In this document: piece by piece, positions 28,777 through 61,380 of the stretch
How positions within the stretch are numbered: the first letter of the stretch is position 1
Layout of the letters: each line of letters opens with the position of its first letter
IMG/VR virus record: IMGVR_UViG_3300028393_000019
Location: 124,001-188,000 of that record
Length of the DNA: 64,000 nt
Reading direction: 5' to 3' (one strand)
Notes under the pieces: model-generated
Seen by the model: only the letters and a program-made list of their open reading frames with translations
Database searches by the model: none
What the model was told of the DNA's origin: nothing
Program-made: the position numbers and the translations under genes

Positions 28777-29155
28777 CAAATTGTTCAATAACAATTTGAG
28801 CTACCTTTTGGTCAAGCCCAGCAACTTTGTCAAATCACAATTCCAAACCATACTGAGTCATGGTCTAGAAGATTTGAATGTGTTTATATTTGACAACGAT
28901 GATACAGACATCAGTTGGCTGTTAAGTTCCAGCTATCAAGCTGATTGTATTATTATTGATGTAGACAACTGTGATCCCCAAACACACAAGTTTGTTACTC
29001 TATTGCTGATGCATCCCAATGCATACTATATGACCAAGGATGAAACAACTCCGTATCATCTTATCAGCCGTAATAGAATTTACGATCTAAATTGGATAAT
29101 AGAAAAAATCAAAGCAGAAGAGGAAGAAGGCCCAGAAGATGAACCAGAAGAATAA
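28739..29155 (+). CDS. hypothetical protein
   Basis: Likely start [13 protein letters not shown]. Confidence 0.7.
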
Positions 29156-29369
29156 AGGTACAGGTGTCACTGTCAAGGACGGAGAGAACATCAATCAGGC
29201 CTTGCGTAGATTCAAACGTAAGATTGAGGATTCAGGGCTTTTGGAAGATTTACGGGCTAAAGAATTCTACGAAAAACCTACCACTGAACGCAAACGTAAA
29301 AAAGGTGCGGCCCAAGCACGTTGGAAAAAGAAGCTGAAAGATCAGCAATTACCCAAAAAAATGTATTGA
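29139..29369 (+). CDS. rpsU: 30S ribosomal protein bS21
   Basis: [13 protein letters not shown]...EFYEKPT..RKRKK. Confidence 0.93.
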
Positions 29370-29399: not shown

Positions 29400-29981
29400 A
29401 TGCTTACTGACATTATGATAGATTTGGAGACTCTAAATACAACTCCAGACGCAACCATCCTAACTATAGGTGCTGTTAAATTTGATCCGTTTGGATTAGA
29501 ATTAAAAGAACCTGCAATGAAAAGCTTCTACTGTAAAGTAGATGTTGATTCGTGTGATAGGATCGGTCTTACCACTAGCGATGACACAATAGAATGGTGG
29601 GCAAGTCAAAGCAAGGAAGCCCAAGAAGCGGCTTTTGATCCCGAAGGAAGAATTGATATTGAAGAAGCGTTTGCGCAACTGTATAAATTCTGTTGGGGCG
29701 CAAAACGTGTATGGTCAAACGGTTCATGTTTTGATATTGTGATCTGCGAACATGTGTTCCGTAAAATCAATCGAGCTTGCCCATGGAAGTTTTGGGAAGT
29801 ACGTGATGTACGCACTGCTTTTGATCTAGGCATCAATCCTCAGCGTCCTCCTATTACAGCTCACCATGCGCTAGAAGATGCATGGAATCAAGCAGTGGGT
29901 ATTCAGAATGTCTACAATACTCTACGCACTTCGACTACATATGAAGGTAAGATGCTACAACCGTTTATTAATCAGAGGTAA
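29400..29981 (+). CDS. DEDD 3'-5' exonuclease
   Basis: MIDLET, WSNG..FD, RDVRT, HHALEDA. Confidence 0.88.
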   Translation: MLTDIMIDLETLNTTPDATILTIGAVKFDPFGLELKEPAMKSFYCKVDVDSCDRIGLTTSDDTIEWWASQSKEAQEAAFDPEGRIDIEEAFAQLYKFCWGAKRVWSNGSCFDIVICEHVFRKINRACPWKFWEVRDVRTAFDLGINPQRPPITAHHALEDAWNQAVGIQNVYNTLRTSTTYEGKMLQPFINQR

Positions 29982-29983
29982 AA

Positions 29984-30265
29984 ATGGACAGTCAAACTAA
30001 AGAAGTAATGGACATTCTACAAGAAGAATGTGCCGAGGTAATACAAGCGGTTAGTAAAATCAGCCGTTTTGGGCTCGATAATCTCAAGCCAGGAAAACCT
30101 AAAACCAACAGGGAACACTTGGAAGAAGAACTAGGCGATTTACAAGCAATGGTAGATATTCTACAAGAGCTTGACATTGTTAGCTTTGCCAACATTGAAA
30201 AAGCCGCAGAGGCTAAACGAGAAAAACTTAAAATTTGGTCAAATATTTTCAAGGAAAAAGTCTGA
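29984..30265 (+). CDS. MazG-like NTP pyrophosphohydrolase
   Basis: LQEECAEVIQA ... LEEELGDL. Confidence 0.8.
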   Translation: MDSQTKEVMDILQEECAEVIQAVSKISRFGLDNLKPGKPKTNREHLEEELGDLQAMVDILQELDIVSFANIEKAAEAKREKLKIWSNIFKEKV

Positions 30266-30357: not shown

Positions 30358-32271
30358 ATGAGCAAAATCATCGGTATCGATTTAGGTACAACAAATAGCT
30401 GTGTGGCAATCCTGGAAAACGGAGTTGCCAAAGTAATTGAAAACAGCGAAGGTGCGAGAACAACACCATCAATCATTGCATATACCAAGGACGAGATCCT
30501 AGTAGGTGCAACAGCAAAACGACAAGCAGTCACAAACCCAAAGAATACAATCTACGCCAGCAAGCGCCTTATTGGTCGCAAGTTTGACGAGAAAGAAGTA
30601 CAAAAAGACATCGACTTGATGCCTTATTCAATTATCAAAGCTGACAACGGTGACGCTTGGATTGAAGCCAACGGCGAGAAACTTGCTCCACAGCAGGTGT
30701 CAGCTGAAGTGCTACGTAAAATGAAAAAGACAGCAGAAGACTATCTGGGTAAAGAAGTTACACAGGCAGTTATCACTGTGCCTGCTTACTTCAACGACAG
30801 CCAACGTCAAGCAACCAAAGACGCAGGACGTATCGCTGGACTAGAAGTTCTACGTATCATCAATGAGCCAACAGCGGCCGCATTGGCATATGGTGTAGAC
30901 AAGCAAGACAAGAAAGATCGTAAGATCGCTGTGTATGACTTGGGTGGTGGTACATTTGACATCTCCATTATTGAAATTGCCAACATTGACGGCGACAAGC
31001 AAATTGAAGTGTTGAGTACAAACGGTGACACATTCCTAGGTGGTGAAGACTTTGACCAAGTTCTTATGGATCATTTGGTAGCAGAGTTTAAGAAAGACAA
31101 TGGTATTGACCTAAAGCAAGACGTGCTGGCTTTACAGCGTTTGAAAGAGTCTGCTGAAAAGGCCAAGATTGAATTGTCTAGTGCCGCAAGTACAACTGTT
31201 AACTTGCCATACATCACAGCAGATGCCAGTGGTCCAAAGCACATGAATGTGACTATCAGCCGTGCCAAGTTTGAGCAAATGGTTGAGAAACTGATCGAGC
31301 GTTCAATTGAGCCATGTAAGATTGCTATGAATGATGCCAAAGTTACAGCCGTAGATATCGACGAAGTTATCCTAGTTGGCGGCCAAACACGTATGCCCAA
31401 AGTGCAAGAAGCAGTTGAGAAACTGTTTGGCAAGGCACCACGCAAAGATGTCAACCCAGACGAAGCAGTGGCCGCAGGTGCCGCAGTACAAGGCGCTGTT
31501 CTAGCAGGCGACAAGACAGACGTGCTGTTGTTGGACGTGACTCCATTGACATTGGGTATTGAAACAATGGGCGGAGTGTTTACCAAGCTGATCAGCAAAA
31601 ATACAACTATACCAACCAAACACTCACAAACATTCTCAACAGCAGAAGACAATCAACCAGCTGTGACAATCAAAGTTGCACAGGGCGAGCGTGAGTTGTT
31701 TAAGTATAATAAGATGCTAGGTGAGTTCAATCTAGAGGGTATTGACCCTGCACCACGCGGTATGCCACAGATTGAAGTCACACTAGATTTAGATGCAAAC
31801 GGTATCTTGAATGTAAGTGCCAAAAATAAAACCACTGGCAAAGAAAACAAGATAACTATCAAGTCTGATTCCGGACTAACTGAAGCTGAAATCCAACGTA
31901 TGGTTCGTGAAGCTGAAGAAAATGCCGAATCAGACAAGAAGGCAGCAGAATTGATCGGAGCACGTAATCAAGCTGAAGGTACTACACACAGTATCAAGAA
32001 AGACTATGAAACGTATAAAGATCAATTGACTGAGGAAGAAAGAACCAAATTTGACGAAGCAGTAAAAGCAGTGGAAACTGCTTGTGCTGGTGAAGACAAA
32101 GAGGCGATTGACAAATCAGTACAGACTTTCTTTGAAGCCGCTGGTCCGGTTATGACTAAAAAACAAGCCGCTGAATCAACGACAGACGAAACCCCAGCTC
32201 AAAGCCAATCAGCTCAAGAGCAAACGGTTGATGCTAGCTTCACAGAAGTTGACAAAGAAGAAAAGAAGTAA
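30358..32271 (+). CDS. dnaK: molecular chaperone DnaK
   Basis: [27 protein letters not shown]. Confidence 0.98.
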
Positions 32272-43614: not shown

Positions 43615-45657
43615 ATGTTAAAGAAACTCATCCTAAGCCCGTGGACTGCACTGCTGACTCTAGTGTTGGTAGTGGGCATACGCATTGCAGATCCCTCATT
43701 TGTTGAAAGCGTACGACTACGCTATTTTGATACATTAATTGTAAACAAAGAACCAACATTTAATAATATTATCACGGTCAACATAGACGAAGCTAGTCTA
43801 GACAAATACGGCCAATGGCCACTACCAAGGGTTAACTATGCTGAAATTATTGAAGACCTTTATCATCGTAATGCTGGCCTTGTTGTGCTTAACGTGCTCA
43901 TGGCTGAGCGTGATCGTACTGGTGGAGATAGGGATCTGGCCTCCACTCTTAAACATTATCCGGTAATACTTCCTAGCGTTCCCAGTAATCAAACAAAGAA
44001 TACACCACGTGTTCCAGGCAGTGCTGTACTAGCACCAGAATGGTTAGATCAAATTGTTCAGTATCCTGGACTTGTTGCCAACATCTCAAGTTTAGAAAAT
44101 AGTGCGGCCGGTGTTGGTATTGTAAACACGCTACCAGAGATAGATGGTGTCAATCGTCGTATGCCTTTGATTGTGTCAGTTGACGGCAAACTTTATCCAT
44201 CAATGAGTTTAGAAACTCTGCGTGTGGCCGCAGGTGACACAACATTCCAAGTTAAGTTGTTTGAAGGTGGCGTTGAGAAAATGCGTATCCCCAAGTTTGG
44301 GCCTGTGACTACAGATAATCTGGGGCGTGTTTGGATTGATTGGAGTCAACAAAATCGTAGTTTTAGTTTGATTAACTTACCCAAAGATTTAGAAGGTGCT
44401 GTTGTTATAGTAGGACCTACAGCCGCAGGTATCGGTAATCCGTTACCAACTAGCAAAGGCGCAATATGGCCTCATGATGTACAAGCCGCTGTTATTGGCA
44501 CAATGATGAATGGAGTTGTTATACAACGGCCTGATTGGGCAGACGGTGCAGAAATATTGGGCTTATTGACCGCAGGTATTTTATTATTATTTTTAACAAG
44601 GTGGACTTATGTTGGTATTGGCGCAGGTGTTGTTATTATTGGCTCTATTATTCCTCTATGTGGACTCGCATATAGCAGTGGCTTACAACTCGTGGATGCG
44701 ACTGTTCCGGTCGGGGGCCTTGTTTTGGTTATGCTTCACGCTTATGGTGTTAAGTTTGTAAGTGAATACTTACAGAAACAAGCAATCAAGAAACAGTTTG
44801 CTGGCTATTGCAGTAAGGAAGTAGTCGAACTACTACAAAAAGATCCAGACTTGATCAAGCGTGGTGTACGTAAAGACGTAAGTGTCATGTTCAGTGATCT
44901 ACGTGGCTTTACTCCTATTGGTGAACATTACGGAGATGATGTTGCTGGCTTGGGCAAGTATATGAACGGATACATGGACAGCATTAGTCGTCCCATGCTA
45001 GATAATAATGGAATGATTATCAAGTACGTAGGCGATGCAAGTATGCACATACACGGTGCCCCTATTGAAGATCCTAATCACGCTAGAACAATAGTTGCTG
45101 TTGGACTTGAAATGCTAGACAAAGTAGACGAGTATACTAACATTATGGAAGCACAAGGATTGCCACCAGCCGCAATGGGTTGGGGTTGTAACTCAGGTAT
45201 TGGCTTTATCGGTGAGATGGGTTCAACAGAACGACACAGCTATGACATCTTGGGTGACATGGTTTCAACTGCGGCACGACTAGAAGCACGTTGTAAAGCA
45301 TATGGTGTATTGTGTATTATTGGTGCTGAAACATACAACCGTACTAAGGATGATTTCTTCTACTTGTATTTGGATAACTTACAACCAAAAGGTAAAACTG
45401 TAGCAGATGCTATCTATACAGCATTACGAACCAAAGGCAACGACTACAGTAAAGAACTTGCCACACACAATAAGATGCATATCCTGTACAAAGAAAAACA
45501 ATTTGATGCGGCTGCTATATTGTGTGGAGAATTGAAAGGCAAGTTTAGCGGACAAATGGACAAGTACTACAAAATGTGGATTGAACGCTGTGCGTTTATG
45601 AAACAGCAAGATCTAGGCGATGATTGGAACGGTGAGTTTATTGCTCACGAGAAATAA
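43615..45657 (+). CDS. CHASE2-domain class III adenylate/guanylate cyclase
   Basis: IDEASL..YGQWP CHASE2 domain, three TMs, FSDLRGFT, KYVGDA, AARLE. Confidence 0.92.
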   Translation: MLKKLILSPWTALLTLVLVVGIRIADPSFVESVRLRYFDTLIVNKEPTFNNIITVNIDEASLDKYGQWPLPRVNYAEIIEDLYHRNAGLVVLNVLMAERDRTGGDRDLASTLKHYPVILPSVPSNQTKNTPRVPGSAVLAPEWLDQIVQYPGLVANISSLENSAAGVGIVNTLPEIDGVNRRMPLIVSVDGKLYPSMSLETLRVAAGDTTFQVKLFEGGVEKMRIPKFGPVTTDNLGRVWIDWSQQNRSFSLINLPKDLEGAVVIVGPTAAGIGNPLPTSKGAIWPHDVQAAVIGTMMNGVVIQRPDWADGAEILGLLTAGILLLFLTRWTYVGIGAGVVIIGSIIPLCGLAYSSGLQLVDATVPVGGLVLVMLHAYGVKFVSEYLQKQAIKKQFAGYCSKEVVELLQKDPDLIKRGVRKDVSVMFSDLRGFTPIGEHYGDDVAGLGKYMNGYMDSISRPMLDNNGMIIKYVGDASMHIHGAPIEDPNHARTIVAVGLEMLDKVDEYTNIMEAQGLPPAAMGWGCNSGIGFIGEMGSTERHSYDILGDMVSTAARLEARCKAYGVLCIIGAETYNRTKDDFFYLYLDNLQPKGKTVADAIYTALRTKGNDYSKELATHNKMHILYKEKQFDAAAILCGELKGKFSGQMDKYYKMWIERCAFMKQQDLGDDWNGEFIAHEK

Positions 45658-46351
45658 GTTTTGCAAGTCCTAATAAACTAAAAAGTCTCAGCCACATATA
45701 ACCAATATCAAATTCAAACCAGCGGCGACTCAGTTTAACGCTTGCTGGATTAAGATGATGGTTATTATGAAGTTCTTCACCGCCCACCACAATGCCCCAA
45801 GGAACAATGTTGCGACTACTATCACGAGTAGTTCCGTTCTTGTAACCATACCAATGTCCTATACCGTTGATAACTCCAGCGGCCCAAAATGGAATCCATA
45901 TCATTTGCACACCCCACACTACAAATCCCCACGGTCCAAAGAACAATAGATCTATGATCAGCATTAGAAGAATACCGAGGCGGCTATGGGGTGTATAAAT
46001 GTTACGCTCAATCCAATCGTCAGGAGTACCTACTCCAAACTTGTTGACCATGTCTGTGTCTTTACTTGCTAGATGATAAAGGCCTGCACCTTTGAAAAAT
46101 ACACGAGCGATGCCGTATACGTGCGGGCTATGCGGATCACCCGCATTATCACTAAATGCATGATGCTTACGATGTATAGCCACCCATTGTTTGGTTACCA
46201 TACCAGTTGTAAGCCATAGCCATGCTCGCATGAAATGGCTTAGTATCGGGTTGAATGCGATTCCCTTGTGCGCTTGGCCTCTGTGTAAAAACAAAGTAAC
46301 GGAAACGATAGTGATGTGTGTGACTACAAGTGTGTATATAATTATGTTCAT
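45638..46351 (-). CDS. delta-9-type fatty acid desaturase
   Basis: His boxes HRGQAH, HRKHH, HNNHH. Confidence 0.92.
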   Translation of the reverse strand: MNIIIYTLVVTHITIVSVTLFLHRGQAHKGIAFNPILSHFMRAWLWLTTGMVTKQWVAIHRKHHAFSDNAGDPHSPHVYGIARVFFKGAGLYHLASKDTDMVNKFGVGTPDDWIERNIYTPHSRLGILLMLIIDLLFFGPWGFVVWGVQMIWIPFWAAGVINGIGHWYGYKNGTTRDSSRNIVPWGIVVGGEELHNNHHLNPASVKLSRRWFEFDIGYMWLRLFSLLGLAKLISREQ

Positions 46352-48420: not shown

Positions 48421-48488
48421 CACAAGGTCGCGTAAAATCAGTCAAAGCTAGAGCCAAACGTGCAACTCGTAAAGCACGTAACAAGTAA
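48417..48488 (+). CDS. 23-aa highly basic peptide
   Basis: AGGAG RBS, ATGA overlap; MTQGRVKSVKARAKRATRKARNK. Confidence 0.6.
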   Translation: MTQGRVKSVKARAKRATRKARNK

Positions 48489-48494
48489 TAGCAA

Positions 48495-48841
48495 AAGAAT
48501 TGTTGTACAAGCCTTAAAGTAAGGCATTCTGGACGCGGGTTCGACTCCCGCCAGGTCCACCATAAGCATATTAGGTCGTTGAGTTAAAAAGTCGCATGTG
48601 ATGCGCTCAGACTAAAATAGTATGCTTTTGATGGGCCTGCCATGGTTTCGACAGGGTGAGATAGGATAAAGGTCAACACGTGGGGTCACGTAAAATACAA
48701 ATAAAGTAAATGCAAAAGCAAATACATTCGAGTATTTCCAAGTTCCTGTAACATTAGCTACTGCTAATGATGCAGAATTTGCAATCGCAGCCTAAGAAAC
48801 TGCACTCGCGAGGTAGGACTTACCTTGTCATCAAAACAACC
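48495..48841 (+). ncRNA. ssrA: two-piece (circularly permuted) tmRNA
   Basis: Acceptor piece ends GCGGGTTCGACTCCCGC-CAGGTCC-ACCA (48562); coding piece starts GGGCCTG (48633) giving G3:U70; tag frame ends ANDAEFAIAA-stop (48795); outer ends approximate. Confidence 0.9.
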
Positions 48842-48868
48842 AAAAAGGCACTTTCGAGTGCCTTTTTT
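48842..48868 (+). terminator. intrinsic terminator after tmRNA
   Basis: AAAAAGGCACT-TTCG-AGTGCCTTTTTT. Confidence 0.88.
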
Positions 48869-48869
48869 A

Positions 48870-48944: not shown

Positions 48945-49397
48945 ATGAAGAAAATTGCAATCGCAACCCTATTGGCCCTAGCGGCCGCAACAGCCAGTGC
49001 TGTAGAAGTTGGCGTCAACGGATCGTACGATTACGGTTCACCAACCCAACGTCCAGGTGCAGGTATCACAATCGGTCAGAAATATGACAAGTTTGGTGTC
49101 ACTGCTGGATTTGATCGTTACTCAAAAGGTACAGATCAAAACAAGTGGACACTGGTTGGTTCATATGATGTGTATTCAGTCGGTGCCGCAACGTTCGCAG
49201 TCAAAGCTGGTGCCGCATATTTGGACAACTATGGTAATGTTGCTGATGGTTATGCTGGTCTAGTTGGCACAGGTGTCAGCTATGCAGTTGCTAAGAATGT
49301 TGCATTGACAGCAGACTATCGCTATCAGTTCGGCCAGTCACGTGTTAACCAATTTGATGGCAACACAATTTCTACAGGCATCAAGGTCTCATTCTAA
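48945..49397 (+). CDS. small outer-membrane beta-barrel protein (OmpA/Ail-like)
   Basis: Signal peptide, alternating beta strands, C-terminal Phe. Confidence 0.8.
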   Translation: MKKIAIATLLALAAATASAVEVGVNGSYDYGSPTQRPGAGITIGQKYDKFGVTAGFDRYSKGTDQNKWTLVGSYDVYSVGAATFAVKAGAAYLDNYGNVADGYAGLVGTGVSYAVAKNVALTADYRYQFGQSRVNQFDGNTISTGIKVSF

Positions 49398-50320: not shown

Positions 50321-50409
50321 GGAAGTGTGCGCTGAATTGGTTGAAGGCAACGGACTGTAAATCCGCCACATAAGAAACATTGTTGGTTCGAATCCAACCA
50401 CTTCCACCA
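50321..50409 (+). tRNA. tRNA-Tyr(GTA)
   Basis: Cloverleaf, long variable arm, encoded CCA. Confidence 0.92.
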
Positions 50410-53597: not shown

Positions 53598-53689
53598 GCC
53601 AGCGAGACTTGACAGTCAGAGAGGTTTTATAAACCTTTTAGCGCCAGATTAGCGTTCTTGAGAGGGTTTGATTCCCTCCGCTGGTACCA
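53598..53689 (+). tRNA. atypical tRNA with TAT anticodon (nominally Ile)
   Basis: GCCAGCG/CGCTGGT-ACCA; GAGGT-TTTATAA-ACCTT arm; short D-arm; long variable arm; TTTGA T-loop. Confidence 0.75.
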
Positions 53690-55959: not shown

Positions 55960-56220
55960 ATGAAAGCAAGTCATATTTTGGTAGCCACACGTGAACAAGC
56001 TGATGCAATCTTGGCTGAAGCAACTGCATTGAATTTTGGATCACTTGCACAGCAGTACAGCTCATGCCCCAGTAAAGCACGTGGTGGCGACTTGGGCGAT
56101 TTCGGCCCAGGTCAAATGGTCAAGCCGTTTGAAGATGCTACTGTGGCAACAGCAGTTGGTGCTATTAGCCAGCCAGTGCAAACACAATTTGGTTTTCACT
56201 TGATCCATCGCACTGGATGA
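55960..56220 (+). CDS. ppiC: parvulin peptidyl-prolyl isomerase
   Basis: ASHILV, SSCPS...GGDLG.F..GQMV..FE, TQFGFHLI. Confidence 0.93.
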   Translation: MKASHILVATREQADAILAEATALNFGSLAQQYSSCPSKARGGDLGDFGPGQMVKPFEDATVATAVGAISQPVQTQFGFHLIHRTG

Positions 56221-56777
56221 TAATAGATTCAAACGATCTTTGCCGCAAGTATGATTACAGTAGTTTGATCTCAGCTACCGAAAACGACACAGCCATAGGC
56301 ATTATCAAAAGTATAATCGAAAGCGGCAACTACTTTAAAAACTCGCCTCCGTTTCAAACACAGGAAAATTTGTTTGGCAGATCCGAGGCAGTTTGGTTGA
56401 AATATCGTATGACATTTTTGACCAGTGTGTTTTTATATTTGGGACACGAAGCCAGAGTCAGCAACATGATGGCTTGGAGTTTTATGACCAATTTGAGCAC
56501 AGTAGAAGATCGTGACAAATATTGGCATCATCATGACAAACATTCGGGCAAAAGCCTAAGCGGAATCATGTACTTGCACATCCCCGACGATGTGAAGGAT
56601 TTTGACACATGTGGCACCGAACTGGCACCCAATGGGCCAGAGTCTCCTGGCAAATTTTTTGTACGACCCAGTTACTGCTCGTGGATTATCTATCCCAGCA
56701 ACATTTGGCATAGACCAGGTATTGTGCAAAGTGACAAATATCGATTTATTTTAGCCGCAGACGTTGACTACGAGTAA
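56217..56777 (+). CDS. putative 2OG-Fe(II) oxygenase
   Basis: WHHH, SGIMYL, YPS.IWH, R..LA. Confidence 0.7.
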   Translation: MIIDSNDLCRKYDYSSLISATENDTAIGIIKSIIESGNYFKNSPPFQTQENLFGRSEAVWLKYRMTFLTSVFLYLGHEARVSNMMAWSFMTNLSTVEDRDKYWHHHDKHSGKSLSGIMYLHIPDDVKDFDTCGTELAPNGPESPGKFFVRPSYCSWIIYPSNIWHRPGIVQSDKYRFILAADVDYE

Positions 56778-56792
56778 AATAGATGTTATAAT
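56764..56792 (+). promoter_or_regulatory. sigma70-type promoter
   Basis: TTGACT-17-TATAAT. Confidence 0.75.
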
Positions 56793-56813
56793 AACGTTTT
56801 AACGGAGATATCA

Positions 56814-57047
56814 ATGCGAAATACAACACTTAGCCGTGGTCCAGAAATTGACAGAGAACTGTGCTGTAGCAAAATGGGGACTGGTATGTATGATCTTGTT
56901 CTGGCAGCCACAGCTCGAGCAAGAGAGATCCGTCGTCAGCATAGAAGCAGTGAGTCATATGAGCATATCTATCCAATAGTAACTGCTATACTGGAAATCC
57001 AACAAGGCAAGATTGATCCAAAAGAGTATCTCAAACGAGTACGTTAA
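56814..57047 (+). CDS. rpoZ: RNA polymerase omega subunit-like protein
   Basis: YDLVLAATARAREI ... PIVTAILEIQQGKI matches the omega motifs. Confidence 0.75.
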   Translation: MRNTTLSRGPEIDRELCCSKMGTGMYDLVLAATARAREIRRQHRSSESYEHIYPIVTAILEIQQGKIDPKEYLKRVR

Positions 57048-57052
57048 TTCGT

Positions 57053-57130
57053 GCAACGGTGGCAGAGCGGCCCAATGCACCGGATTGCAAATCCGTAAAA
57101 CCGGGGGTTCAAATCCCTCCCGTTGCTCCA
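57053..57130 (+). tRNA. tRNA-Cys(GCA)
   Basis: CGGA-TTGCAAA-TCCG arm, U73, CCA. Confidence 0.92.
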
Positions 57131-57140
57131 TAAATAACAC

Positions 57141-57169
57141 TTGACATCTATGGTAATAGGTGTTATAAT
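57141..57169 (+). promoter_or_regulatory. sigma70-type promoter
   Basis: TTGACA-17-TATAAT. Confidence 0.8.
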
Positions 57170-57196
57170 TTTATTTTAAGAAATCAAGGAGCAGAA

Positions 57197-57439
57197 ATGC
57201 GCGAATACGAAAGCATCCAAGGCGACAATTTAGAGGAAGCGGATCAAGCACAGCTATTGTCTACTGCTCTAAGTGCAGACGCTGTGGCCAAGATCAGAGC
57301 CAGTATCCCTACTGGGCCCAGTTTGAGTCATTGCAACGAATGCGGAGAAGAAATTCCGCTTGCTAGGCAACGAGCATTGCGTGGATGCATGACCTGTATC
57401 GATTGTCAAACACTTAGCGAAAGAAAGAAGTTAGGATAA
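57197..57439 (+). CDS. TraR/DksA C4 zinc-finger protein
   Basis: EEADQA tip motif; CNECGEEIP.AR...CMTCIDCQ. Confidence 0.9.
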   Translation: MREYESIQGDNLEEADQAQLLSTALSADAVAKIRASIPTGPSLSHCNECGEEIPLARQRALRGCMTCIDCQTLSERKKLG

Positions 57440-57606
57440 TGAAAATCCAATTTACAAAAGAAACTATGCCCGACGAACTGTACAATACGCTCCTACAGCA
57501 CTTTGTAAACGAAGCAGTTGGACTAGGGGTAGAAGTAAACAAGTTTACCCAGTTTGATAATTGGGTAATTGAATGTACCGTGGATGCAAAAGAATCGGTG
57601 CATTAA
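57439..57606 (+). CDS. 55-aa hypothetical protein (not in ORF track)
   Basis: MKIQFTKETMPDELYN...; TAATG coupling on both sides. Confidence 0.6.
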   Translation: MKIQFTKETMPDELYNTLLQHFVNEAVGLGVEVNKFTQFDNWVIECTVDAKESVH

Positions 57607-58067
57607 TGCCCAAGTGTTATCAATTAATCGGAGTTCCCTGCGCAGGAAAAAGTACTTGGACTAAGAGCCAGCAATGGATCTTAGGTATGGAGTATGTAAG
57701 TACTGACCATCATGTAGAAGTCTATGCTGAACAGCAAGGTAAGACTTATTCAGAAGTGTTTAAGGATTACATGCCTAGAGCAGTTGAACTAATGGCACAA
57801 GAAGTCGTAGATGCTAGAACAGCAGGACGTGATGTGATTTGGGATCAAACTAGTACTACAGTTGCTAGCCGTGCTAGGAAGTTTAATATGCTTCCTGACT
57901 ATTGGCACATCGCTGTGGTGTTTCCGACTCCTGAAATCGCAGTATTGAAAGAACGTTTGGCTAGCCGTCCAGGCAAAGAAGTTCCTTGGGAAGTTGTACA
58001 AGGAATGATCGATAATTTTGAATACCCTACTAACGAAGAGGGTTTCAAAGAAATTTGGAGGGTATAA
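57606..58067 (+). CDS. P-loop polynucleotide-kinase-like protein (AAA_33)
   Basis: GVPCAGKST, STD, WDQTS, ERLASR. Confidence 0.85.
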   Translation: MPKCYQLIGVPCAGKSTWTKSQQWILGMEYVSTDHHVEVYAEQQGKTYSEVFKDYMPRAVELMAQEVVDARTAGRDVIWDQTSTTVASRARKFNMLPDYWHIAVVFPTPEIAVLKERLASRPGKEVPWEVVQGMIDNFEYPTNEEGFKEIWRV

Positions 58068-58534
58068 TGCCTTGGATTGAAAACGTAGCCGCAAGTGATA
58101 TCCCAATTGGATTCCATCACGATGCTGGCCCTAATAGTATGCTGATCAGTATAGTTGATCCTGCAAGCTGGCGACCTGAAGCCAAACACCAATTCAAAGA
58201 GCGCCACAACTTTGAGTTTTTGGATGTGGAAGAAAAGGATTCGGTACTGGAAGAATCAATGAAGTGCAGTCATGAGCAGGCCGCAGAGCTTGTTCGTTTG
58301 CTACAACACGCATTGGACAACCGTATGAATGTAGTGGTCCATTGCTTTGCAGGCATTTGCCGTTCGGGCGCAGTTTGCGAAGTAGGGATTATGATGGGAT
58401 TTGACGACACAGAACGCTTTCGTAGTCCAAATCTTTTGGTTAAGCATCGTATGATGAAGCAGTTGGGTTGGACCTACGATGAAAACGAAAAGCCCAATAT
58501 CGACGACTGGCGTACTTTTAGATCGGTTGACTAA
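58067..58534 (+). CDS. Cys-based (PTP/DSP-like) phosphatase
   Basis: VVHCFAGICRS (CX5R). Confidence 0.85.
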   Translation: MPWIENVAASDIPIGFHHDAGPNSMLISIVDPASWRPEAKHQFKERHNFEFLDVEEKDSVLEESMKCSHEQAAELVRLLQHALDNRMNVVVHCFAGICRSGAVCEVGIMMGFDDTERFRSPNLLVKHRMMKQLGWTYDENEKPNIDDWRTFRSVD

Positions 58535-58555
58535 TTGGCAAATTGAGTGTATAAT
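58527..58555 (+). promoter_or_regulatory. sigma70-type promoter
   Basis: TTGACT-17-TATAAT. Confidence 0.75.
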
Positions 58556-58584
58556 AATATATTAAACAATGAAAGGAGGGCAAG

Positions 58585-59190
58585 ATGCCTAGTGTTTTTC
58601 TAGTAAGTGATACGCACTTTGGACACAAAGGCGTATGCCACTTTACACGTAACGATGGTGTTACAAAACTTCGCCCATGGGACTCGCCCGAGGAAATGGA
58701 CGAAGCAATGGTCAAGGCGTGGAACGAACGGGTAAAGCCCACAGACAAAGTCTACCATTTGGGCGACGTTGTTATCAATCGTAGAGCGTTGGATATCATG
58801 CATAGACTTAACGGCGACAAAGTGCTGATTCGTGGTAATCACGATATCTTTAAAGACACAGACTATCGTGAACACTTTAGAGAACTTAGAGCTTATCACG
58901 TTATGGATGGTATGATCCTTAGCCATATTCCGTTACACTCAGATTCAATGGGTCGTTTTGGTGTTAACATTCACGGTCACACTCACGCAAATCGTGTGAA
59001 AAAAGCTCGTGGGGTTGATGCTAGAACTGGGGAAGTTCTGTACAGCGAAGAGAACGATGTGCGCTACCATTGTGTATGCGTGGAACAAACCCCAGACTTC
59101 GCTCCAATTCTGTTTGAAGATGTCATAAAGAACATCGAAGCAGAAGGCGGGAGTGTAGGATTCCGCAACGGAAACGGTCCTACTATGTAA
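58585..59190 (+). CDS. calcineurin-like metallophosphoesterase
   Basis: SDTHFGH, HLGD, GNHD, SH.P, HGHTH. Confidence 0.9.
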   Translation: MPSVFLVSDTHFGHKGVCHFTRNDGVTKLRPWDSPEEMDEAMVKAWNERVKPTDKVYHLGDVVINRRALDIMHRLNGDKVLIRGNHDIFKDTDYREHFRELRAYHVMDGMILSHIPLHSDSMGRFGVNIHGHTHANRVKKARGVDARTGEVLYSEENDVRYHCVCVEQTPDFAPILFEDVIKNIEAEGGSVGFRNGNGPTM

Positions 59191-59204
59191 TATAGTAGCA
59201 CTTT

Positions 59205-59231
59205 AATAGGGCCTTCGGGCCCTATTTTTTT
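59205..59231 (+). terminator. intrinsic terminator
   Basis: AATAGGGCC-TTCG-GGCCCTATTTTTTT. Confidence 0.88.
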
Positions 59232-59307: not shown

Positions 59308-61380
59308 ATGTCGCTACAAATTAGACGCGGAACTGATGCCCAAAGACAAGCAGTAACTTTTGACTTAGGCGAAATTTTATACACAACAGATACTAAGAAA
59401 CTCTTCATTGGTGACGGTGCCACGTTGGGCGGTGTAAATGTTCTTGCTAGCTCAGCTGGTACTGGACTAAGTTGGAATTCAACTACACAAACACTAAACT
59501 TTTCAGGAACATTAAGTGGTTATACCACAGATAACCTAGCACAAGGTACAGTCAACTTATACTATTCACCCACACGGGCGAAAGCTGATATAGCTACCAT
59601 GTTTACTGCTACAGGATCTAGTACAGTGACAGGAACAGTTACAGCTACCACAGCCACTACAATTTCATTTGTAGGCGCAGTGTCTAGCATCAACGGTGTA
59701 GGTATACTAACGTACACCAGCGGCACAGTACCGCAGATTGGCATGGTTATAACAGGTACCGGTATCAATGCAAGCCCTGCCACATACATTGTTTCAGGTA
59801 CTAGTCCCACATTTATTTTAAATCAAGTACCTACAGCCGCAGGTACAGGCGTAGCAATACAGGGTGTGATATCACTGGTCACAGTCAGCTCGGCTGCTGG
59901 ACTGGTAGCATTAGAACCTTTCTTAGTAACAGGATCAGGAGGTGGTGGTCTATCACCTAGCACCTACTATATCATTAATCCTTCAGCCGGTACCAATCAA
60001 ATTACCCTGGCAACAACTCAAGCTAATGCACAGAACAGTGTTGCAATAACTACACTAACGACTGCTACATTATCTGCTACTAATTTTAGTGCTGGCGGCC
60101 CTGATGCTAATGTTACGTTTTCTTATAATTCTGTAACTGGCACTATGAGTGTCAATTCAGCTGGTTCGGGACTCACAGCTATATTGCAAGATAGTAGTCC
60201 AACATTGGGTGGAAATTTAACGCTCAACGGTAACACAATTAGTGGCAATGGCAACATCAATATTACAGGACAAATTCTTGCTAATGTTATATCAACAACT
60301 TTAACTAGTGTTAGCGGAACACAAGTGTTGTTGGTTTCTAATACAAATATGCGAGTAGGAATGCCTATAGTGTTTGGCCTTACAAGCCAAACAGCAGTGA
60401 CTACAGGTAATATTATTCCGTATTTGACATATTATGTTGCGAGCGTATTAGCCGGTAACTATATTACTATATCAACCACAATCGGCGGAACTGCGTTCAA
60501 TGCCGGCACTGCTAGTGGTACGATGTTTGTTACAGCCAACGGGCTGGATACCGGCGTTGTAACTGCTAGTTCAGTTAATGTTAATTCAATGTTAACATTC
60601 AGAGACATGACATATCCCGCAAACACTACTGAATATCAAATTTCAGGTATTAGCGGCTATTTTGTATTTGGACAAGCAAGCGCACCTCAGAACTTTGTGT
60701 TCAATACCAACTCAGCTGACCAACCATTCACTATTAGAGGTGCTACTACTGGGAATTTTGGAAACCAGCCTAATCTTAAGTTTGGAAGTTCGAGAGGAAC
60801 CGTGGCAGCGCCACTGATATGCCAAAACGGTGACTCAATCGGTCTAATCAAGTTTGATCCCTACACTGGTATTGCTAGCATGGGCGGCTATAGCAATGGT
60901 GCATTTATTACGGCATATGTAAGCGATTCAACCTTCGTGGCAAATGCCGCGCTAGTAAATACCACCATCGCTATCGGTAATGATGCTGATATTGGAACTG
61001 GTACATATACTACATTTGCACCAGGTGGAGTTGTAACAGTACCGGTCCTTACTAGAAACTTAGTAAACGAAGTTACCAATTTTATTGCTGTTGGTAGTAG
61101 TACCACTTATGCATTGAGTACCACAGCAACTAATAATATCTTAATAACTAGCGGTAGTTATACAGCAACACTAACGTTTCCTAGTTCCGGACTACGTGAT
61201 GGACAACTTGTCAAATTTACTGTTGCGGCAACTGCATCAGCATTTACATTGACTTTGGCATTAACTGCCGGTCCCACTTTGATAGGAACATTTGCAGGTG
61301 CAGTTGCAACCTCTGCATCGACAGCTACAACTTATTCCTACATATATAGGGCCAGTAATACTAGTTGGTATCGAGTTTAA
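59308..61380 (+). CDS. tail fibre-like protein
   Basis: LQIRRGT...GE..YTTDTKKLFIGDG N-terminal domain; Thr/Gly/Ser-rich; TAAATA upstream. Confidence 0.8.
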   Translation: MSLQIRRGTDAQRQAVTFDLGEILYTTDTKKLFIGDGATLGGVNVLASSAGTGLSWNSTTQTLNFSGTLSGYTTDNLAQGTVNLYYSPTRAKADIATMFTATGSSTVTGTVTATTATTISFVGAVSSINGVGILTYTSGTVPQIGMVITGTGINASPATYIVSGTSPTFILNQVPTAAGTGVAIQGVISLVTVSSAAGLVALEPFLVTGSGGGGLSPSTYYIINPSAGTNQITLATTQANAQNSVAITTLTTATLSATNFSAGGPDANVTFSYNSVTGTMSVNSAGSGLTAILQDSSPTLGGNLTLNGNTISGNGNINITGQILANVISTTLTSVSGTQVLLVSNTNMRVGMPIVFGLTSQTAVTTGNIIPYLTYYVASVLAGNYITISTTIGGTAFNAGTASGTMFVTANGLDTGVVTASSVNVNSMLTFRDMTYPANTTEYQISGISGYFVFGQASAPQNFVFNTNSADQPFTIRGATTGNFGNQPNLKFGSSRGTVAAPLICQNGDSIGLIKFDPYTGIASMGGYSNGAFITAYVSDSTFVANAALVNTTIAIGNDADIGTGTYTTFAPGGVVTVPVLTRNLVNEVTNFIAVGSSTTYALSTTATNNILITSGSYTATLTFPSSGLRDGQLVKFTVAATASAFTLTLALTAGPTLIGTFAGAVATSASTATTYSYIYRASNTSWYRV

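Follow-up and report, generated by a model that had tools for sequence, protein, structure and literature searches.

We found that an uncultivated giant freshwater phage encodes its own copy of omega, the smallest subunit of bacterial RNA polymerase (RNAP), changed in the segment where the host's omega helps hold the starvation signal ppGpp, and, next to it, a TraR-type regulator of RNAP. We tentatively propose that in this way the phage uncouples host transcription from the host's alarm signal. The omega belongs to a family present in at least 122 IMG/VR viral loci, on contigs up to 383 kb, and we found no paper describing a phage-encoded omega.

A phage omega homologue and a TraR-family gene around a tRNA

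We analysed a 64,000-nucleotide stretch (the window; positions 124,001 to 188,000) of IMG/VR record IMGVR_UViG_3300028393_000019, a record of 265,680 bp estimated to be about 72% complete. An earlier note had placed an omega-like ORF and a TraR/DksA ORF, each with its own consensus sigma70 promoter, on either side of a tRNA-Cys, with an omega N-terminus lacking the MAR start. This observation is confirmed, as all the elements lie where they had been placed (Table 1). No alternative genetic code was needed.

Table 1. Positions in the window of the features discussed in the text.
Position	Strand	Feature	Description
29139-29369		Ribosomal protein S21	
29984-30265	+	MazG-like nucleotide pyrophosphohydrolase ORF	93 aa; named in the earlier note
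30358-32271		DnaK	
48450-48869	+	Permuted tmRNA	Betaproteobacterial type
55960-56220		Parvulin PPIase	Two genes upstream of omega
56764-56792	+	Sigma70-type promoter of the omega gene	TTGACT-17-TATAAT (11 of 12) with extended TG; A+T-rich discriminator AACGTTTT
56814-57047	+	RNAP omega (RpoZ) homologue	77 aa, beginning MRNTTLSRG
57053-57130	+	tRNA-Cys (GCA)	Encoded CCA; starts 5 nt after the omega stop codon; last gene of a 28-tRNA array
57141-57169	+	Sigma70 promoter of the TraR operon	TTGACA-17-TATAAT (12 of 12) with TG; discriminator TTTATTTT
57197-57439	+	TraR-family C4 zinc-finger protein, predicted to bind the RNAP secondary channel	80 aa; first gene of a packed operon (orf55, AAA_33 kinase, DSP phosphatase)

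The omega ORF matches Pfam RNA_pol_Rpb6 (PF01192) at 35.2 bits against a gathering score of 26 (35.1 bits in the whole-genome scan), although it stays below the NCBIfam rpoZ equivalog cut-off (TIGR00690, 19.5 against 23.6 bits). In the reciprocal direction, a profile of the phage family has E. coli rpoZ as its best hit in the K-12 chromosome (E 1.3e-9), and hhalign against the omegas of Limnohabitans, Polynucleobacter and E. coli gives a probability of 98.8% (E 6e-17 over 64 columns). The AF2 model (pLDDT 86.8) has a predicted omega fold: nearly all of the top 50 Foldseek matches are RNAP omega chains (probability up to 1.00, TM 0.5-0.66, although E-values are weak for so short a protein), as are all 50 listed VIA matches, with Z up to 7.9 (rmsd 2.4 A over 66 residues) and 59 chains with Z of 5 or more. 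We rejected the possibility that omega is a spurious ORF in a tRNA spacer, because of the Pfam hit, the Shine-Dalgarno sequence, the conservation in 65 distinct sequences and the signature of purifying selection; between relatives the non-synonymous difference (pN) is 0.06-0.41 and the synonymous difference (pS) is 0.57-0.91, and dN/dS is 0.04-0.37 where it can be computed.

The TraR ORF matches zf-dskA_traR (PF01258) at 39.1 bits against 24.9 and phrog_54 at 2e-19, and scores just under the cut-off of TIGR02419 (58.1 against 59.7 bits). It has a TraR-like size and layout, with one N-terminal helix instead of the DksA coiled coil and a C-terminal helix; its residues 13-78 align to residues 2-68 of the 72 of F TraR (E 4e-7). 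The four Cys (C46, C49, C67 and C70), E13, E14, A18 and R57 are invariant in the family. The tip motif that in TraR reaches the active-site region is, however, ExxDxA (E13-E-A-D16-Q-A18) rather than DxxDxA, with D or E at position 16 in 11 relatives, and 12 extra residues precede it. P2 Orf82 and X. bovienii Gp34, which have incomplete motifs, were less active (PMC9239242). R57 corresponds to R48 of F TraR (rim helices), whereas position 58, corresponding to R49 (beta' Si3), is Gln in the window and most relatives and Arg in two related loci, L011 and L013.

The tRNA-Cys was found by ARAGORN and by the Rfam tRNA model (57.4 bits). The Shine-Dalgarno sequences GGAG and AAGGAG lie 6 and 5 nt before the ATG codons of omega and TraR, respectively. 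As a comparison with chance, the window holds 14 sites with at least 11 of 12 matches and a 17-bp spacer, all on the + strand, while dinucleotide shuffles give 0.78 +/- 0.83 for both strands. A promoter with at least 10 of 12 matches lies at the same distance upstream of omega in 40 of 73 non-redundant related loci, many of them 12 of 12, and in 53 of the 73 a tRNA gene starts within 30 nt of the omega stop codon. The TraR promoter is conserved in loci L002-L004 and L038, but is absent where TraR follows the tRNA by 14-29 nt. In these several diverged lineages (L011-L013, L018, L024, L066, L067 and L075) the gap holds only a Shine-Dalgarno sequence, and omega, tRNA and TraR form one operon, so the pairing of omega with TraR is not chance. 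TraR is not a constant partner, however: two near-complete omega-carrying relatives (94% and 100% complete) have no TraR, which ruled out that TraR always accompanies omega, and omega's role cannot depend on it. A lake metatranscriptome run holds mismatch-free contigs across the omega/tRNA-Cys junction and TraR, but at a depth of only 2-6 in an RNA library where DNA carry-over is not excluded.

Distribution, probable host and N-terminus of the omega family

We searched for the omega outside IMG/VR. A tblastn search with the phage omega against 50,697 phage records found nothing. With E. coli omega or a more bacterial-like family member as query, the only hits, judged from the listing alone, look like host DNA, contamination or misfiled bacterial contigs: 100%-identical E. 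coli omega in 1.5-kb 'phage' records and in Campylobacter phage records, Salmonella contigs, 240-kb 'Acinetobacter phage MD-2021a' contigs and a 4.4-kb fragment. A scan of 185,579 species genomes for phage-type omega also found none. A megablast hit to Yersinia phage fHe-Yen9-04 covers only the tRNA-Cys, and its neighbours are unrelated hypothetical proteins. The jumbo-phage surveys PMC7824862 and PMC13282480 do not mention omega, rpoZ, DksA or TraR, and the literature searches, which did not cover most subscription papers and are not proof of absence, found no description of a phage-encoded omega.

The probable host lineage is Burkholderiales. The omega is 41% and 38% identical to two Limnohabitans omegas, 32% to that of Polynucleobacter and 27% to that of E. 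coli. The phage DnaK is nearest to those of Comamonadaceae and other Burkholderiales (65-77% identity), and the tmRNA is of the betaproteobacterial type (Rfam RF01850, 118.5 bits against 84; also called as a permuted tmRNA by ARAGORN). We found no Pfam beta, beta' or sigma70 (region 2) domain in this genome record, and no beta' catalytic domain in five omega-carrying relatives, three of them 94-100% complete. Very divergent phiKZ-type subunits could escape Pfam, and the record is incomplete, but these results, together with the near-consensus promoters, point to a host partner for the omega rather than a phage polymerase.

The missing MAR start is real and can be stated more exactly. Host-type omegas begin MARITVEDC, whereas the phage omega carries a conserved 8-residue N-terminal extension (L6-S7-R8-G9, followed by P10), and host A2-R3-I4-T5 become P10-E11-I12-D13; E11 aligns with R3, I12 with I4, D13 with T5 and C17 with C9. 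In 65 distinct family members the new N-terminus is as conserved as the core (S7 in 62, R8 in 64, D13 in 61 and C17 in 63). Omega residues 2-5 plus beta' R362, R417, K615, I619 and D622 form ppGpp site 1 (PMC7676912), where the main chain of Ala2, Arg3 and Val4 binds the terminal 3'-phosphate (PMC10191844). VIA structural ranges leave the N-terminal register uncertain by about two residues (phage 8-10 aligning with E. coli 2), and it is therefore possible that the S7-R8-G9 backbone rebuilds a phosphate cradle instead of destroying it. Candidate host beta' keeps the pocket (K362, H364, K/R417, K/R615, V/I619, D622), but Q623 and Y626 differ, and use of site 1 by Burkholderiales RNAP is inferred from residue conservation only.

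Proposed action on the ppGpp sites and alternatives

The interpretation offered in the earlier note, that the phage targets both ppGpp sites, for example to keep stable-RNA promoters active, possibly helped by a MazG-like gene, is only partly supported. Both gene identities, both promoters and the departure of the omega N-terminus from the proteobacterial MAR(V/I)T segment are correct, and targeting of both sites is plausible but unproven. The proposed aim, however, is probably backwards. F TraR and five tested homologues, four of them from known phages, bind RNAP and act without ppGpp, but mimic DksA plus ppGpp and inhibit rRNA and r-protein promoters (PMC9239242). The phage's own tRNA and mRNA promoters would escape because they are near-consensus with A+T-rich discriminators, not because TraR protects stable-RNA promoters. 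In addition, site 1 is reported to control elongation, pausing and backtracking rather than the stringent response at initiation (PMC10191844). The MazG-like ORF exists (PF03819, 26.9 bits against 22), but nothing links it to ppGpp, and no RelA/SpoT or HD_4 domain is present in this genome record.

Our preferred explanation, held with less than even confidence, is that the window comes from a lytic jumbo phage of freshwater Burkholderiales that has no detected RNAP of its own and transcribes from very strong sigma70 promoters, and that the host-derived omega, among its most strongly promoted genes, takes the omega position on the host beta' subunit. Its rebuilt N-terminus would then alter site 1: the residues whose backbone and Arg3 hold the 3'-phosphates of ppGpp are replaced, and the acidic residues and the extension would either shut ppGpp out of the pocket or fill it as a protein stand-in. 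Either way, RNAP would no longer read the alarmone at a site that in E. coli controls pausing and backtracking during elongation. In the subclade that includes this phage, a TraR homologue, made from the same or the next promoter, would bind the secondary channel and act without ppGpp in place of DksA plus ppGpp (site 2), turning down host rRNA and r-protein promoters and freeing RNAP for phage promoters, which in this view form stable open complexes and should be insensitive. Our analysis establishes the gene identities, the predicted omega fold, the residue register within the limits given above, the family-wide conservation, the genomic arrangement and the promoters. Binding of omega to host beta', displacement of host omega (an exchange not known to occur on assembled RNAP in vivo), the action of this TraR homologue on RNAP, any effect on ppGpp and the direction of that effect are inferred.

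A stronger form of this view, held with lower confidence still, is that a whole clade of jumbo phages of freshwater Burkholderiales hijacks host RNAP by subunit replacement. The viral omega, made early from a consensus promoter and released from a tRNA-linked transcript, would take the place of host omega, its conserved L-S-R-G-P-E-I-D N-terminus blocking site 1 or acting as a built-in protein stand-in for ppGpp. In the TraR-carrying subclade the second site would be taken over by a protein in the same way, making RNAP deaf to the alarmone at both sites. This would be the first viral omega subunit and the first natural factor aimed at site 1.

It is also possible, though we think it less likely than our preferred explanation, that the phage simply tops up omega as a beta' folding and assembly factor, so that host RNAP stays intact and abundant during a long jumbo-phage cycle, and that the N-terminal change has nothing to do with ppGpp. 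The established role of omega is as a beta' chaperone (PMC5811629), the phage also carries chaperone-type genes (DnaK and the parvulin PPIase), omega occurs without TraR in complete relatives, and other phages encode core-machinery parts such as ribosomal protein S21 (PMC6375957). However, the extension and the P-E-I-D replacement are nearly invariant across 65 diverged sequences and differ from the host's equally conserved MARITV, while a mere spare part would be expected to keep the host N-terminus; omega levels in E. coli are also reported to change little with growth conditions (PMC7676912).

More doubtful is that the omega sits on host beta' as a docking handle, its L-S-R-G-P peptide recruiting another phage factor, such as a late sigma-like factor or a modifying enzyme, or shielding RNAP from a host defence, with ppGpp not being the target. 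Near-invariance of S7 and R8 in an exposed segment modelled with low confidence (mean pLDDT 61 for residues 1-10) is typical of a short linear binding motif, and, with no sigma70-family gene found, the control of late transcription is unexplained. No candidate partner was identified, though, and the motif lies directly on the residues that align with the site 1 segment, which makes site 1 the simplest target. Least likely is the view of the earlier note that omega and TraR, perhaps with MazG, cancel the stringent response so that stable-RNA promoters, including those of the phage tRNAs, stay active: both proteins map to the two ppGpp sites and flank a tRNA within a tRNA array, and a MazG domain is present, but every TraR homologue tested inhibits rRNA and r-protein promoters (PMC9239242), the site 1 mutant of E. 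coli has a normal stringent response (PMC10191844), the consensus phage tRNA promoters need no protection, and the record holds no ppGpp hydrolase or synthetase domain.

The role of omega, and of site 1 in particular, has been hard to pin down, as rpoZ mutants have mild phenotypes and site 1 was only recently tied to elongation and DNA repair (PMC10191844). A phage family that has copied omega, kept it under purifying selection, rewritten the segment that aligns with site 1 and placed the gene among its most strongly promoted early genes is a natural experiment suggesting that the site matters during infection. If our reading is correct, it would add subunit replacement to the known ways in which phages take over host RNAP. 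The repeated omega-then-tRNA arrangement raises the separate question of how an mRNA is expressed from inside a stable-RNA operon. The TraR part would extend a known mechanism to lytic jumbo phages and is less new.

Comparison with known systems

We compared the two proteins with their closest known counterparts. The omega shares with bacterial RpoZ, especially the short (66-67 aa) omegas of Limnohabitans and Polynucleobacter, the predicted fold, the conserved core (the NRF/Y-DLVL...RAR and VTAL.EI..G blocks) and the C-terminal ending (EMLKRV against EYLKRV). It differs in being encoded by a virus, in its N-terminus, in scoring below the TIGR00690 cut-off, and in lying inside a tRNA array instead of the gmk-rpoZ-spoT neighbourhood seen in E. 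coli. The TraR homologue resembles F-plasmid TraR and its phage homologues (lambda Orf73, P2 Orf82, VP882 Orf61 and VHML Orf8; Gopalkrishnan et al. 2022, PMC9239242) in its size of about 80 aa, C4 zinc finger, acidic N-terminal tip motif, R48 equivalent and C-terminal helix; it aligns to F TraR end to end, over the residues given above, it is phage-borne, and its nearest relatives are in phages of proteobacteria. It differs in the tip (ExxDxA, or ExxExA in the more distant lineage), in the Gln at the R49 equivalent in the window and in the 12 residues before the tip motif, and it is encoded by a lytic-looking jumbo phage in an operon with an omega gene and a tRNA, not in a lysis-lysogeny region.

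Small, early-expressed phage proteins, such as Xanthomonas phage P7 and the gp79 protein seen in RNAP structures, also reprogram host RNAP without binding DNA; structures with such factors appear among the fold matches only because those complexes contain omega. Those proteins are phage inventions that bind the surface of RNAP, whereas this one is a copy of a genuine RNAP subunit that would replace its cellular counterpart. Finally, phage ribosomal protein S21 (PMC6375957), which this phage also has, is another case of a virus carrying a small, exchangeable subunit of a cellular machine, as are the Rpb6 subunits of giant eukaryotic viruses. The Rpb6 subunits of giant viruses serve the virus's own polymerase, whereas here no viral polymerase was found, so the omega would have to act on the host enzyme.

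Sequence features of the window

The window is bases 124001-188000 of an IMG/VR virus record that is 265,680 bp long and estimated to be about 72% complete, and the G+C content of the window is 39-44%. An earlier note had claimed that an omega-like and a TraR/DksA gene, each with its own consensus sigma70 promoter, flank the last tRNA gene, and that the omega N-terminus lacks the MAR start. We found this observation to be correct in every element. The coordinates of these and other features are collected in the table below.

Features of the window
Feature	Coordinates	Strand	Description
Ribosomal protein S21	29139-29369		first gene of a cluster of machinery-type genes
Rv2179c-like 3'-5' exoribonuclease	29400-29981		same cluster
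MazG	29984-30265		same cluster
DnaK	30358-32271		same cluster; full length
CHASE2 sensor fused to adenylate/guanylate cyclase domain	43615-45657		680 aa; unusual phage cargo
Fatty-acid desaturase	45638-46351	opposite to the CHASE2-cyclase ORF	unusual phage cargo
tmRNA	48450-48869		permuted (two-piece), betaproteobacterial type; RF01850, 118.5 bits, also RF04321; 27-residue tag (ARAGORN) ends ANDAEFAIAA
ORF just after the tmRNA	48945-49397		150 aa; weak matches to outer-membrane beta-barrel families (Porin_2, OmpA_membrane, YfaZ; about 20-22 bits)
Two perfect sigma70 promoters	49488 and 49588		follow the 150-aa ORF
tRNA array	starts at 50321		28 tRNAs called by ARAGORN
tRNA-Ile(TAT)	53598-53689		92 nt; ARAGORN call between tRNA-Leu and tRNA-Thr
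Parvulin-type PPIase	55960-56220		upstream of omega
Putative 2OG-Fe(II) oxygenase	56217-56777		directly upstream of omega
Promoter upstream of omega	56764-56792	+	TTGACT-17-TATAAT, extended TG
Omega ORF	56814-57047	+	77 aa; begins MRNTTLSRG
tRNA-Cys(GCA)	57053-57130		five bases after the omega stop codon; last gene of the array
Promoter upstream of TraR	57141-57169	+	TTGACA-17-TATAAT, extended TG
TraR ORF	57197-57439	+	80 aa; opens a tightly packed operon (57439-59226 with the features that follow it)
55-aa ORF			TraR operon; TAATG overlap
AAA_33/polynucleotide-kinase-like ATPase	57573-58067		TraR operon
Dual-specificity phosphatase	58055-58534		TraR operon
Metallophosphoesterase	58585-59190		separately promoted
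Terminator	59205-59226		
Protein with N-terminal Mtd_N (major tropism determinant) domain	59308-61380		690 aa; possibly a receptor-binding protein

Both the omega and the TraR promoter are followed by good Shine-Dalgarno sequences. The window holds 14 sites with at least 11 of 12 promoter matches and a 17-bp spacer, in contrast to 0.78 +/- 0.83 in dinucleotide shuffles. All 14 are on the + strand, all have A+T-rich discriminators and seven are perfect (12 of 12), which suggests a genome region transcribed by unmodified host sigma70 holoenzyme from unusually strong promoters. The tRNA-Ile(TAT) called by ARAGORN is not reported by the Rfam tRNA model (27 tRNAs by Rfam against 28 by ARAGORN), and is probably a false call or an aberrant gene. 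The kinase and phosphatases encoded beside the tRNA array might, speculatively, heal RNA ends.

The omega homologue, its viral family and the probable host

We analysed whether the omega ORF is a true omega homologue and a real gene. It scores 35.2 bits on Pfam RNA_pol_Rpb6 (cut-off 26), although only 19.5 bits on the NCBIfam rpoZ equivalog (cut-off 23.6). A profile of the phage family has E. coli rpoZ as its best hit in the K-12 chromosome (E 1.3e-9), and profile-profile comparison with the omegas of Limnohabitans, Polynucleobacter and E. coli gave 98.8% probability (E 6e-17). The AlphaFold2 model has a pLDDT of 86.8, and its structural neighbours in the PDB are almost exclusively omega chains of bacterial RNAP structures, with Foldseek probability up to 1.00, VIA Z up to 7.9 and 59 chains at Z of 5 or more. 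Between relatives, synonymous sites are saturated (pS 0.57-0.91) while pN is 0.06-0.41; dN/dS, where it can be computed, is 0.04-0.37.

The gene belongs to a phage family and is not a one-off. A word-based protein search found 36 relatives of 38-99% identity, nearly all 72-80 aa long, on contigs up to 302 kb, several of which had already been labelled as omega subunit by the JGI pipeline. A scan of IMG/VR found 122 loci on viral contigs up to 383 kb, including records that CheckV rates 94-100% complete. In contrast, tblastn against 50,697 deposited phage records found no real member, as the few hits to bacterial-type omega appear to be host DNA or misfiled bacterial contigs, and none was found in 185,579 species-representative bacterial and archaeal genomes. 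Literature searches and two jumbo-phage surveys turned up no description of a phage omega.

We found no recognisable beta, beta' or sigma70 gene in the phage, and five omega-carrying relatives, three of them near-complete, also lack a beta' catalytic domain. Together with the consensus sigma70 promoters, this makes it very likely that the omega acts on host RNAP. Several observations point to the host lineage. The tmRNA is of the betaproteobacterial type; the phage DnaK is nearest (65-77% identity) to Comamonadaceae and other Burkholderiales such as Limnohabitans, Rhodoferax and Polynucleobacter; and the sequencing runs that hold the sequence are freshwater and lake metagenomes. The phage omega is 41% and 38% identical to two Limnohabitans omegas, 32% to that of Polynucleobacter and 27% to that of E. 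coli, and shares their short length and C-terminal ending. The gene was, therefore, most likely captured from the host lineage.

The omega N-terminus and ppGpp site 1

Host-type omegas begin MARITVEDCL. Both MAFFT and hhalign place phage P10-E11-I12-D13 opposite host A2-R3-I4-T5, anchored by the shared Cys (C17 with C9) and the NRF/Y-DLVL helix, and eight residues, ending L-S-R-G, precede this segment. Across 65 distinct family sequences S7 (62), R8 (64), D13 (61) and C17 (63) are as conserved as the core. In E. coli, omega residues 2-5 together with beta' R362, R417, K615, I619 and D622 form ppGpp site 1 (PMC7676912), where the main chain of Ala2, Arg3 and Val4 holds the terminal 3'-phosphate (PMC10191844). 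E. coli site 1 controls pausing and backtracking in elongation, and is dispensable for the stringent response at initiation (PMC10191844). Candidate host beta' subunits keep most of the pocket (K362, H364, K/R417, K/R615, V/I619 and D622), while Q623 and Y626 differ.

A proline at the A2 position, acidic residues at the R3 and T5 positions, and a chain that continues from the point where the phosphate sits all argue that site 1 is altered, although sequence alone cannot distinguish a blocked site from one filled by a protein stand-in. It is also possible that S7-R8-G9 rebuild a phosphate cradle, as the VIA ranges leave about two residues of uncertainty in the register. The identity of the genes and their arrangement are, thus, well supported, whereas the action of omega on host beta', though very likely, is inferred, and the effect on ppGpp site 1 is a reasoned inference.

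Genomic setting of omega and comparison of TraR with known homologues

In addition to the features described in the earlier note, we found that omega lies within stable-RNA operons, in the window and among loci L005-L087 (L numbers are our labels for related loci). In 53 of 73 non-redundant related loci a tRNA gene starts within 30 nt of the omega stop codon, usually 1-10 nt away, and the tRNA differs between lineages (Val 30, Pro 12, Cys 4, Gly 3, Leu 2, Trp 1 and Met 1). In 40 loci a promoter with at least 10 of 12 matches, often perfect, sits at a fixed distance upstream of omega, and most of the others have a tRNA 16-31 nt upstream. Omega is thus a protein gene built into the stable-RNA operons, and its mRNA 3' end is presumably made by RNase P cutting at the downstream tRNA, a step that is inferred. 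A lake metatranscriptome run holds mismatch-free contigs covering 56857-57090, 57081-57249 and 57223-57438, the first of which spans the omega stop codon and the start of the tRNA; since depth is 2-6 and these are contigs, transcription is suggested but not shown. The order PPIase, oxygenase, omega is conserved in many relatives. In the closest diverged relatives, L002-L004, a 53-aa ORF of unknown function (for example L002 4236-4397) is inserted between omega and tRNA-Cys, moving the tRNA to 168 nt after the omega stop codon.

We compared the linkage of omega and TraR between loci. In L011-L013, L018, L024, L066, L067 and L075, where the omegas are 49-65% identical to that of the window, TraR starts 14-29 nt after the tRNA with only a Shine-Dalgarno sequence between, so that these are omega-tRNA-TraR operons. 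In the window and in L002-L004 and L038, a 12 of 12 promoter fills a 66-75 nt gap. However, TraR was found near omega in only 18 of the fetched loci, and is absent from two near-complete omega-carrying genomes. Omega is therefore the wider, older feature, and TraR is an add-on in one subclade.

The interpretation in the earlier note, that the phage targets both ppGpp sites, for example to keep stable-RNA promoters active, and that a MazG-like gene may add to this, is only partly supported. The MazG idea has no support beyond the presence of the domain, and no ppGpp-metabolising domain was found. F TraR, lambda Orf73 and four other homologues bind RNAP and inhibit rRNA and r-protein promoters without ppGpp (PMC9239242), and the suggestion that the pair keeps stable-RNA promoters active is therefore the wrong way round for TraR. 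Phage promoters would escape because of their own kinetics.

TraR homologues are common in phages of proteobacteria (157 records, with Ralstonia phages as the best hits). Residues 13-78 of the TraR in the window align with F TraR residues 2-68 (E 4e-7), and the four Cys, E13, E14, A18 and R57 (equivalent to TraR R48) are invariant in 11 relatives. The tip motif is ExxDxA rather than DxxDxA, and the equivalent of R49 is Gln in the window.
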